DNA from: Iphione sp. A-MEVVRFRX5
Lineage: Eukaryota
Reading direction: 5' to 3'
Length of the DNA stretch: 64,000 nt
NCBI GenBank assembly: GCA_976226885.1
Contig: OZ320315.1
Coordinates: 868,001 to 932,000, forward strand
How positions within the stretch are numbered: position 1 is the stretch's first letter; each line of letters opens with the position of its first letter. This document shows, in pieces, positions 46,393 to 50,421 of the stretch. The notes under the pieces were generated by a model that saw only the letters and a program-made list of their open reading frames with translations, had not been told where the DNA came from and searched no databases. The position numbers were made by a program, and so were the translations under genes.

Positions 46393-48716
46393 GCAATGAT
46401 TAGACCATTCATATTGTCTATCCTTCTAGTTTCCAGCATGAAGGGTGTCTTGGAAATTAACTAAACATAGATTCACTGACACCAACTTGTATAAAGTCTT
46501 GATAATTAGCTTTGAAACTAATAAATATATGGTACATATTGTTTAAAAGTTCTGCTTAAGAAAAGTTTCACTGAAGTAACTTTCTATCTACGTTAATTCC
46601 TAGGTACTTATAAAACTCACTCATGTACCTTATTACATTTGGAGTAAATTCTGAATCCCTGATATTGTTTCATGTTCGACATATATAACTGTGTTATCTG
46701 CACACAGTAGCATGGTCCCGTTTTAATTGCAGCTTGGTATGTTATCTATAAAGACAACAAAAAGTAAAAAGTCAACAATTGAGCCTTGGGTGACAGCACA
46801 GAGTCCAGCTTTTTCTAGGCTTGGTATTCTTTTCACTAGTGTCTGCACCTTTCTATGACTCACATTACTCTGGAACCACCCAATATGTTAGCTTTTGCAA
46901 ACAGTTTGTTATAGAATGATTGAAAACACTTGAAGACAGACTACAAATATTACACCAAATAGTCTCATGCTATTCCATTCATAGGATATATCATTCACAA
47001 GTTGGTATTTCACTGTTATTTCACAACCCCAGGTTTGTTACATGAAAGTTTGTTGCATTCCAGGTTTGTTACATGAAAGTTATACAAGTTACTATGGGTT
47101 CTTGGTCATCAATACTGGAAAATAAACTTATAGTATCCATTTTATATGTGTCATTTTTACAGAGGTCACAAAAATTCAAGAAACACTTGAGAAAAATATC
47201 CTTATCCAGGATATGCATTTTATATGGAAATGCCTTAATACATCAGTAAGCTTCTGCACGGCAGTGCCTGATGCCATCATTGACCCTTATAGGGTTAATA
47301 TAGTGATGAATAACTTGAGCTATATTCATATGTCCAGGGCAGCTGAGGTGAAATCAGTCCTCTAATTTATCCTTCAAAGGTGTATTTTTCATGAGCATGT
47401 GGATGAACAATTTTTGAGTACCACAGAGTGAGGATATGCATAGTAACACTCCACCATACTTGATATTAGTTTTTTGTTCTAAAGACATTCTGGAGGACAT
47501 CATATCACCATCAATCACTTTCAAAACCAATGAGATAAAGAGGCACCACTGGTAGGACAGAGATAGGGGGAAGGGAAAGACAGGGGGAGCTAGAAGGTAA
47601 CAACTTTAACACAGTAAACACCTTATCAGAGGGGGAAACAGTTAAATATATGCAATTTGGCTGATAAACTGCAAATTTCATTTAAAATTCTGCTAAAACA
47701 TGGCAAAATGGATTCAGGGATAGAGACAGAGGGAGGAAGATACAGCGAGTAAGATGGAGGGAGAGTGAGACAGAGAGAGGGGAAGAGAAATGGGAGGGAA
47801 AGTGAAAGAGGGAGAGAAAGAGATGAGGCATAAAGAAGATGAGGGAGGGAAAGAGCAGGAGGTAGGGAGGGATAGAGAGCAAGAAAGGAAAAGCGGAAGG
47901 CAGAGAGATAGCAAAGGAATGAAGAGGAGAAGAGAAGAGAGAAAGGCAGAGAGAGAGGGTGACACCATCAACATAATAAATACCCCCATTATAGGAAGAG
48001 GGGGAAACAGTGAAAAAAACAAAATTATAGAAATTCAGCTGACAATCAACAGCATTCATGTAATTTTTGCTGAACAATGGCAACTTCAGGTGGAAAACTG
48101 CACAGCTCACAATAAATCATGCCAGCAGAGCGATATCAACAGATGCCTAAGGAATTTTACATGTATCACATGTGTATCTCTTTGCCTTCCTCCCTCCCCC
48201 TGCTGTTTTCTCTTTCTTTCTCTCTCTCCTCTCTAGTAATGGTAAGAGGGGGGGGGGAGTAAAAGTACACAGAGATGATGGGAGTGGGAGGTACATTCAA
48301 GTGTCTACCAACTTCAGAGCTATATTGCAGGCACTTATAGTAGTCGTGGGAGTCTAATATTTACACAGAGAATAAATTTCAAAAAAACAGTCAACTTCCA
48401 GTTTTAGCCCCTGTGACTTCCAACTCATTTTGCTGTAACGGGTCACATATTGTCTTTATTATTTTGAAAAACCAGAGGATATAAGTAAAAATGAAATCAA
48501 CTCAAACAAAGATTCCTCCCCTCCCTATTTAGGGTTTTGGCTGGTCGTACCCAGAAACATGCATATTTTTTTGGTCTAAATCCCCCACTGCTCAGATCTA
48601 TGACCAAACTGCAATAAGAAGAAGAAGTGATGGTATTTCCCATAGCTCGTCTGTGACTTGTCATGGGGTGAGCGATAATGGAGTCGGTGAAGGGGTAATT
48701 GTAGTATAACGCACAT

Positions 48717-49148
48717 TTTAGTTTATGAAGACTTTTCCGGTCTTAGGGAGCTAGCACCAGTGGGGAATTGAACCCCAGACCTTTGGCATGAGAGGCCAAC
48801 ACCTAACCATCTGAGCTAAAGGGGAAACCCCACTAGCCAAGGGCTAGAGGTTGACCTTATGGCCTCATTAACTTAACACTCTCCCTTACACAGTTGAATT
48901 GGCATGTACCACTCATGCCTTTACTATATATATGCACTTTGCTTGGCATTTTTCATATATTGGGATCATTTTGGTTCTCCACCAGTTTTAGTTTATGAAG
49001 ACTTTTCCGGTCTTAGGGAGCTAGCACCAGTGGGGAATTGAACCCCAGACCTTTGGCATGAGAGGCCAACACCTAACCATCTGAGCTAAAGGGGAAACCC
49101 CACTAGCCAAGGGCTAGAGGTTGACCTTATGGCCTCATTAACTTAACA
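48717..49148 (-). mobile_element. TRIM (miniature non-autonomous LTR retrotransposon) with tRNA-like Pol III promoter in both LTRs (TRIMp3/Helenus-like)
   Basis: Identical LTRs at 49148-48987 and 48878-48717, starting TGTTAAG. PBS TGGTGGAGAACC (48984-48973). PPT AAGGGAGAG (48887-48879) abuts the 3' LTR. TSD CACAT at 48712-48716 and 49149-49153 (or 4-bp CACA). Each LTR has A-box TAGCTCAGATGG and B-box GGTTCAATTCC. Confidence 0.85.
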
Positions 49149-50421
49149 CACATGTACTATTTCAACATGTACCACTTGCCCAACTACTTTGCTGCCGGTT
49201 CCAGTAGAAGCGTCCCGAGCTTGTTCGACTTTAGTTGGTGCTCCCCTCTGAGAATCATCAATAAATCAATAAAAAGTACTTTCAGTTATATAGCAGACAG
49301 AGGTAGGACGATACACAGACATCAATACCAATTATGGCGCTGTATACAATCATGTAGCAGTTTAACTGTGTCTACTGCCAGATGTGATGGCTCACGGATG
49401 TGTGTAAGCCATCATCATGTAAACAGGGGGGATCAACTATTCTGGTGAAACGTTATTGCCGATTTTAATTCAATGCGAAACGTTATTTGCCCTTCTATAT
49501 ACACTGAAGCGTTATGAGGCATATCCTGGTGAAGCGCTATCAAAGAGTTAAATCCACGTGAAGCATTATCTGGCCTTTCCTTAAGCATTACGGGTCCTTT
49601 GAATTCTTGGTGATGCGTTATTGGGTACCCCCTGACCCCCCCTGTATGTAAGGGAGGGGGAGAGACGGGGAGGGAAGAGGAAGTGGAGTGGGGAAGGGAG
49701 GAGACGTGAGCAGTTGAGGGGGACAGTAAGGGAGGGAGGAGAAGAGTGAGGCAGAAGAGAGAGGATGAGGGAGGAGGTGGAGAGGGCGGAGGGAGGAGGT
49801 GAGCAGTTGAGGGGGACGGGCCATAAGGGAGGGAGGAGGAGAGTGAGGGAGGGAACAGAAAGGAGGAGGGGAGGAGAGTAAGAGTGCGTGAGGGAAGAGA
49901 AGAGGAGGAGTGAGAGAGAGTGGAGGGAGGAGGAGAGAGAGGAAGGGAGGGAACTGAAGAGTATGGGAGGAAAGGGAGTGAGGGAGGGGAGATAAAGAGT
50001 TGGGTAAGAGAGGACAGAAGGACAGAGAGAGAGATTACTATAGAGTAAGGGTTAGGGTGGTAGGGAACGGAGGAGGAGAGTGAGGGAGGAGGAGGACAGC
50101 GGGTGAGGAAGGGGAGAAGGACAGAGAGAGATTATTATAGGGTAAGGGTTAGGGTGGTGAGGAATGGAGGAGGAGAGTGAGAGAAGAGGAAGGAGGAGAC
50201 TGAGTAAGGAAGGGTAGAAGGACAGTGGGACAAGTGAAGAAGAAGAAAAGCTGAGAGAGACTTGACTTCCTGGACAGATAGCAGCTGCTGGTTACAACCT
50301 CCGGATCTTGTTGACGGAGATAGGAAACCATATGAAGGTGGACGTCCTGATAAGGGAAGGACAGCCTGGAGGAGTTCTCACCTGTGATAAGGCGTGATTG
50401 TGGTTGGGTAAGATGTGCATA

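Follow-up and report, generated by a model that had tools for sequence, protein, structure and literature searches.

The window analysed here is a stretch of 64,000 nucleotides from Iphione sp. A-MEVVRFRX5 (assembly GCA_976226885.1, contig OZ320315.1, positions 868,001 to 932,000), whose minus strand carries a 433-bp element with the layout of a terminal-repeat retrotransposon in miniature (TRIM). Read in the orientation of the element, an upstream target-site duplication (TSD), TGTG (49149-49152), is followed by a 5' long terminal repeat (LTR) of 163 bp (48986-49148, TGTTAAG...CTAAAA), a one-nucleotide spacer, C (48985), a primer-binding site (PBS) of 12 nt, TGGTGGAGAACC (48973-48984), an interior ending in the polypurine tract (PPT) AAGGGAGAG (48879-48887), the adjoining 3' LTR of 163 bp (48716-48878) and the downstream TSD, TGTG (48712-48715). 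The interior, counted from the spacer to the PPT, is a non-coding segment of 107 bp (48879-48985) that holds a hairpin with a 6-bp stem (48901-48919), and no open reading frame (ORF) longer than 45 amino acids overlaps the element. The coordinates of every part were re-read from the sequence by script. A repeat finder reports the direct repeats as 48716-48879 and 48986-49149, 164 nt each, 100% identical and offset by 270 nt; since one of these 164 bases, a G, is common to the PPT and the left flank by chance, the LTR proper measures 163 bp, with ends set by 25 other copies of the family. The preliminary description of this DNA had already recognised the identical LTR pair and its TG...AA ends, which are present here and across the family copies, but its LTR length of 162 bp, its dinucleotide AC between LTR and PBS and its interior of 108 bp must be replaced by 163 bp, a single C and 107 bp, respectively.

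Each LTR contains a tRNA-like module, located at 49031-49088 in the 5' LTR (box A 49077-49088, box B 49034-49044) and at 48761-48818 in the 3' LTR (box A 48807-48818, box B 48764-48774), which scores as a tRNA with the Rfam model RF00005 (33 bits, for a gathering score of 29). The match is limited to model positions 8-63, that is, the D arm, the anticodon arm and the T arm, and an acceptor stem cannot form from the bases on either side of it. ARAGORN called no tRNA anywhere in the window, and Rfam found no 5S rRNA in it, the LTRs matching tRNA only. Box A (TAGCTCAGATGG, LTR positions 61-72) and box B (GGTTCAATTCC, LTR positions 105-115) start 44 nt apart, the same distance that separates position 8 from position 52 in tRNA genes. 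The partial Rfam match, the lack of an ARAGORN call and of an acceptor stem, and the canonical spacing of the boxes together indicate that the module, whose tRNA origin had been proposed from the letters of the sequence and now agrees with the Rfam model in both LTRs, is a putative tRNA-derived type-2 RNA polymerase III (Pol III) promoter module and not a tRNA gene.

The same observations bear on the idea that each LTR is a functional gene for a tRNA (or another small RNA) and the element mainly a vehicle for its spread, which we regard as very improbable. The loop would read CUC (Glu) within a body that is presumably unlike tRNA-Glu, and a molecule restricted to positions 8-63 leaves no acceptor stem. 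What can be said for this idea is that the tRNA model was passed and that, among Helenus elements, defined as TRIMs that have a PBS and a PPT and whose LTRs include a sequence derived from a tRNA, a few bivalve and fungal families might encode a tRNA (Kojima, 2024; PMC10886601).

Just upstream of box A, script positions place two short palindromes, CTAGCC-CTT-GGCTAG and GGGG-TTT-CCCC, at 49091-49117 in the 5' LTR, and the equivalent pair at 48821-48847 in the 3' LTR. The second palindrome was considered as an NF-kB-type site and discarded, as its oyster counterpart, GGGTTAACCC, departs from the NF-kB consensus. A sigma-70-type promoter scan of the region targets bacterial promoters and has no bearing on a eukaryotic element.

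The host genome (1.18 Gb, 89 contigs) was searched with the element, yielding 1486 first-look candidates. The 47 scored matches, from 40 candidates, were nearly all 97-100% identical and most spanned query positions 5/6-438, corresponding to the 433-bp unit. Exact-pattern searches with at most two mismatches retrieved 257 LTR/PBS junctions and 681 LTR cores genome-wide, and none with the reversed patterns used as controls, so that the family has about 250 interiors and about 680 LTRs. As 257 interiors account for a maximum of 514 of the 681 LTRs, the remainder, at least about 170, must be solo or truncated; around one third of the first 100 LTR matches listed lacked both a junction match and a partner at 270 bp. 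Thirty loci, the best-scoring ones, were fetched and studied. The LTR-interior-LTR layout was constant in all of them, and five presented tandem forms with three or more LTRs. The genome-wide count called for by the preliminary description therefore recovers full-length, tandem and solo copies alike.

The boundaries of the element are fixed by the 25 simple copies among these loci, in which the flanking sequence diverges right outside TGTTAAG and CTAAAA; consequently, the LTR ends are set and the TSD is 4 bp long. A perfect 4-bp TSD was found in 18 of the 25 (chance rate 1/256 per copy), while two others had one mismatch, one becomes perfect when one A is counted with the flank, and one was 5 bp long. 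Two of the three-LTR arrays were also bounded by 4-bp TSDs (ATAT and GTAG). The ambiguity left initially between 4 and 5 bp in the window is thus settled at 4 bp by the other copies. Except in one of the 25 aligned copies, the LTR ended in AAAA, unlike the canonical TG...CA, which is typical of Helenus but does not define it.

These data are also those that discriminate between an LTR element and a local tandem duplication of a tRNA-derived short interspersed nuclear element (SINE), or an assembly duplication, mimicking an LTR pair. Seen in the window copy alone, a pair of identical 163-bp units with an offset of 270 bp might conceivably have arisen in this way. However, the succession LTR-C-PBS-interior-PPT-LTR recurs at around 250 places, dispersed over many chromosomes, with different flanks and with its own 4-bp TSDs; the interior has a perfect tRNA-Ala PBS and a PPT where they are required, and neither a poly(A) tail nor a tail of simple repeats is present. 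With their TSDs and differing flanks, the family copies rule out an origin as a SINE dimer, by local duplication or as an assembly artefact, to which we grant next to no probability. The LTR-element interpretation has therefore withstood the very refutation that had been named for it, and the TRIM architecture proposed from a single locus is now supported by hundreds of LTR-PBS-PPT-LTR copies, 4-bp TSDs, solo LTRs and tandems.

The two LTRs were identical in eight of the 25 copies, with a mean of 1.5 differences per 163 bp, and pairwise divergence among copies averaged 1.9%. The window copy differs by one base from the 25-copy consensus and its LTRs are identical, in agreement with the early suggestion that it is very young. 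Nevertheless, zero differences over just 163 bp per LTR give no absolute age.

Three further observations concern the diversity of the family. First, 27 consecutive LTR positions (94-120; 49029-49055 and 48759-48785 in the window), comprising box B and the T arm, are invariant in the 50 LTRs of the 25 copies, in which 33 of the 163 positions vary; this invariance may be due to chance, through a longest-gap effect, or to a subfamily effect. Second, a shorter and diverged LTR of the same kind (L016:374-484; 94% identity, with deletions), probably solo and belonging to an older subfamily, lies around 1 kb from a full copy. Third, two loci (L026, G000:C13:101796283, and L027, G000:C12:785653) are identical in both the element and its flanks and are a duplicated locus, resulting from a segmental duplication or from an unplaced haplotig.

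The PBS was invariant across the 25 aligned copies, and the genome itself encodes its presumed primer. A search anchored on a tRNA-Ala-like 5' half retrieved nine tRNA-Ala(AGC) genes, which have an ATCGAT T-loop and a G6-U67 pair and share identical ends, ...CCCGGGTTCTCCA, the last bases being GGTTCTCCA. Once CCA is added, the final 12 nt of this tRNA pair perfectly with the PBS, and the 13th base does not match. The assignment of the PBS to tRNA-Ala, made initially without knowledge of the host, thus holds for the tRNA-Ala(AGC) of this very genome. A 25-mer, GGGGAGTTAGCTCAGTTGGTAGAGC, occurs at around 100 or more sites over all large contigs (141 listed); as these sites far outnumber the nine true tRNA-Ala(AGC) genes, they probably represent another tRNA-derived repeat family, either a SINE or another Helenus.

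The use of tRNA-Ala is not restricted to the TRIM. A 15-nt tRNA-Ala PBS was found at 1169 sites genome-wide, compared with four in the control, and 20 sampled sites (L085-L104, all on G000:C1) include at least three families of LTR elements with a one-base spacer, C. The sampled families share a conserved leader and a gag-like reading frame that opens at ATGGCAGAC. The number of PBS sites, together with this conserved leader opening a reading frame, indicates that coding LTR elements primed by tRNA-Ala are abundant, and tRNA-Ala seems to be a dominant primer among the LTR elements of this genome.

Such elements are where the proteins required by the TRIM could come from. A further 238 non-TRIM sites presented an LTR end AA, followed by C and the tRNA-Ala PBS, the next base being different from the A of the TRIM. 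At one of them (L097), the LTR ends with AGTCTTCAATCTTAAA, compared with AGTCTTCATAAACTAAAA in the TRIM, both having AGTCTTCA and a (T/A)AAA end in common; a BLAST alignment between the two extends for 31 nt across the LTR/PBS junction with 87% identity, and a gag-like reading frame opens 41 nt after the PBS. From this single sample of 615 bp, the L097-type family appears to be a credible helper candidate.

Another locus, L083 (C1:136.16 Mb), seemed to be a long element sharing the LTR and an extended PBS with the TRIM, but it was rejected, being a TRIM without TSD fused to an unrelated family. At L083:637-1085 (G000:C1:136164636-136165084), the TRIM runs, after LTR-C-TGGTGG, into an unrelated repeat through the microhomology AGAACC; this repeat has around 1000 first-look candidates, and its other copies continue differently upstream. 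We therefore read L083 as a rearrangement, not as a helper. The partner family carries an ORF of 449 amino acids (L083:1946-3295) with a Baculovirus F (env-like) domain (Pfam E = 7e-12), and the 3-kb env-bearing part of L083 has a second copy, inverted, around 7 kb further on, with 92% identity. A second junction of the TRIM LTR and extended PBS like that of L083 is located at G000:C2:6692812-6692976.

The insertion sites provide a weaker but independent indication of the type of helper. Alternating pyrimidines and purines were observed in 8 of 19 TSDs (P about 0.001) and in 6 of 19 TSD-centred hexamers (2e-5), in a test that was chosen post hoc. The gypsy element of Drosophila prefers YRYRYR targets and generates 4-bp TSDs. 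Together with the 4-bp TSD and the one candidate family, this alternation suggests that a Gypsy-type integrase, and hence a Gypsy-type helper, may be involved. At the same 19 sites, the base before the TSD was a purine in 13, the base after it a pyrimidine in 14 and position -10 a purine in 17, without correction for multiple looks. In the window, the insertion sits in non-coding DNA between two GA purine-rich low-complexity tracts (47600-48230 and 49640-50400) with imperfect repeats of 24-50 nt.

From these elements, the following cycle can be proposed. TFIIIC and Pol III would bind boxes A and B, and transcription would start a few bases upstream of box A, at around LTR position 50 and near the second palindrome, which would divide the LTR into a U3 of around 50 nt and an R-U5 of around 113 nt. 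As there is no run of four T on the sense strand of the element, the transcript would continue across the interior as well as the 3' LTR and end in the flanking DNA, where the first run of five T is found 225 nt downstream of the element; the sense strand has six runs of four or more A, four of them in the unique 270 nt. An extension of the RNA 3' end past the 3' LTR is no bar to strand transfer, which needs complementarity alone, as known from retroviral biology. A coding LTR retrotransposon that likewise uses tRNA-Ala would supply the proteins that package the RNA, reverse transcription would be primed by tRNA-Ala, with minus-strand transfer onto the R-U5 of the 3' LTR, and the plus strand would be primed at the PPT. 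Finally, the product would be inserted by a Gypsy-type integrase through 4-bp staggered cuts, preferentially at sites of alternating pyrimidines and purines.

An alternative to this cycle concerns the polymerase. The element could be an ordinary TRIM driven by RNA polymerase II (Pol II), its tRNA-like stretch being the relic of an old SINE insertion in the LTR without a role in transcription. The use of Pol III is deduced from motifs, the LTR has no Pol III terminator, the tRNA-like part is devoid of an acceptor stem and the function of the Helenus promoters remained without validation in their description (Kojima, 2024; PMC10886601), all of which would suit a Pol II element. In contrast, boxes A and B keep both their consensus and the exact tRNA spacing, and in the comparison with nemertean and bivalve Helenus LTRs they are the best conserved part, while the LTR ends were replaced. 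Moreover, no TATA-like feature was noticed in the element, although none was searched for, and the related Cassandra is reported to be transcribed from its Pol III promoter (Kojima, 2024; PMC10886601). Because the use of Pol III is drawn from motifs, the Pol II alternative retains some weight, but we consider it unlikely.

Taken together, the element is probably best explained, including the mechanism proposed above, as a near-consensus and recently inserted copy of a family of Helenus-type TRIMs, which belong to TRIMp3, the group formed by Helenus and the 5S-bearing Cassandra and Ajax (Kojima, 2024; PMC10886601). All the structural features of Helenus were found, namely the TRIM layout, boxes A and B in the LTR, a PBS for a host tRNA, the PPT and the 4-bp TSD, and the initial proposal of a small-RNA-bearing TRIM of this kind is borne out at the level of the family.

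Several points weigh against this interpretation and call for caution. Only conserved motifs speak for transcription by Pol III, and the promoters of Helenus as a whole had not been validated experimentally (Kojima, 2024; PMC10886601). The absence of a T4 run is not unusual for the length and composition of the element, as 42% of shuffled sequences also have none (P = 0.42), and 4 of the 14 published Helenus LTRs compared do not have one either; the argument from the Pol III terminator was therefore dropped, the absence of T4 being merely compatible with read-through. The 3' LTR ends in AA and not in the CA normally needed by retroviral-type integrases, and the case for the helper draws on 615 bp of one candidate copy. 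Likewise, the divergence measured among copies is biased low, toward young copies, because the best-scoring ones were taken, and the homology to the published Helenus elements comes from visual alignment and not from an alignment program.

This family adds a young, and probably still mobile, member to a class described only in 2024. The match to a host tRNA-Ala, the near-identical copies and the candidate helper make it a practical system in which the use of Pol III, the start and end of the RNA and the change of helper could be approached. For genome annotation, it explains several hundred false "tRNA-like" matches.

Among known systems, canonical Pol II TRIMs ("TRIMp2") resemble the element in size, layout, non-autonomy and the existence of tandem LTR-interior-LTR-interior-LTR forms, but they have no small-RNA-derived promoter in the LTR. 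The tRNA-derived SINEs (SINE2) are also short, non-coding, dependent on the proteins of another element and endowed with a tRNA-derived internal Pol III promoter; they differ in their lack of LTRs, PBS and PPT, their 3' tail, their use of the machinery of long interspersed nuclear elements (LINEs) and their variable TSDs, in contrast to the LTR-retrotransposon parts and the fixed 4-bp TSD observed here. Closer to our element, Cassandra in plants and Ajax in nemerteans carry the promoter of a small-RNA gene in each LTR of a non-autonomous miniature element, and Cassandra also forms tandem arrays, but their module is derived from 5S and their TSDs are 5 bp long, instead of a tRNA-derived module and 4 bp.

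The closest relationship is with Helenus itself, whose TSDs are 5 bp in fungi and plants and 4 bp in animals, and whose animal members appear to depend on Gypsy (Kojima, 2024; PMC10886601). With an LTR of 163 bp, an interior of 107 bp and a total of 433 bp, the element lies within the range of bivalve, brachiopod and nemertean Helenus (LTR 104-193 bp, interior 58-268 bp; Table S1 of Kojima, 2024), and tandem arrays and solo LTRs exist in both. The likeness extends to the sequence. The arrangement of two palindromes followed by TTTAGCTCAG (box A) is also present in Helenus-1_LiLo and Helenus-1_NGe from nemerteans, Helenus-1_CGi and Helenus-6_SaGl from oysters and Helenus-4_MiYe from a scallop, where a CTAGC..GCTAG-type palindrome precedes GGG..CCC and then TTTAGCTCAG. 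From the first palindrome to past box B, the identity with Helenus-1_LiLo is approximately 73%, about 69 of 95 positions as counted by eye. Judging from this comparison, the LTR core, made of the two palindromes and the tRNA-like module, appears clearly related to that of nemertean and bivalve Helenus and would share a common lineage with it.

Outside this core, no match to the published relatives was found. The PBS corresponds to tRNA-Ala, which is absent from the primers listed for animal Helenus (Lys, His, Ile, Pro, Glu and Ser in bivalves; Lys, Leu, Trp and Arg in wasps; His, Leu and Lys in vertebrates; Kojima, 2024; PMC10886601), and the interiors of the nemertean Helenus-1 elements start with a different PBS, TGGCGCCCAACGTGG. 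The PPT differs from that of nemertean and bivalve Helenus, and the LTR ends are TG...AA instead of the TG...CA of the published relatives, although Helenus-6_SaGl is also non-canonical. A run of four to six T near the 3' end of the LTR, which is present in 10 of the 14 published Helenus LTRs compared, is missing here. None of the diagnostic 12-17-mers of the family (from the PBS, the box-A region, the LTR start and the T-arm) occurs in the published Helenus sequence file; judging from this file, it is therefore not one of the described Helenus families, as suspected in the preliminary description. A metagenome scan with the conserved LTR-core pattern gave no match.

The changed LTR ends, PBS and PPT around a maintained core point to a change of helper element, and a conserved promoter core with exchanged outer modules is most simply read in this way. 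Helper change by Helenus has been discussed in general terms (Kojima, 2024; PMC10886601). A more far-reaching scenario, which we put forward only tentatively and hold to be possible rather than probable, is that annelid, nemertean and bivalve Helenus descend from one very old LTR core whose outer modules were swapped for those of new helpers, the family of this worm having taken a tRNA-Ala-primed, AA-ended helper with which it is still jumping. If true, the family would be a tractable system in which to observe a Pol III-driven LTR parasite switching helpers, and also the first annelid Helenus. The six animal phyla with Helenus do not include Annelida (Kojima, 2024; PMC10886601), and full-text literature searches retrieved no report of annelid Helenus or TRIMp3 elements; the class reaches a seventh animal phylum if this host belongs to the annelids. 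As the kind of element was already described in 2024 (Kojima, 2024; PMC10886601), this is a new Helenus family in a new host and not a new mechanism, with modest departures from the known Helenus that comprise a tRNA-Ala primer, an AA-ended LTR and, probably, a new host phylum.

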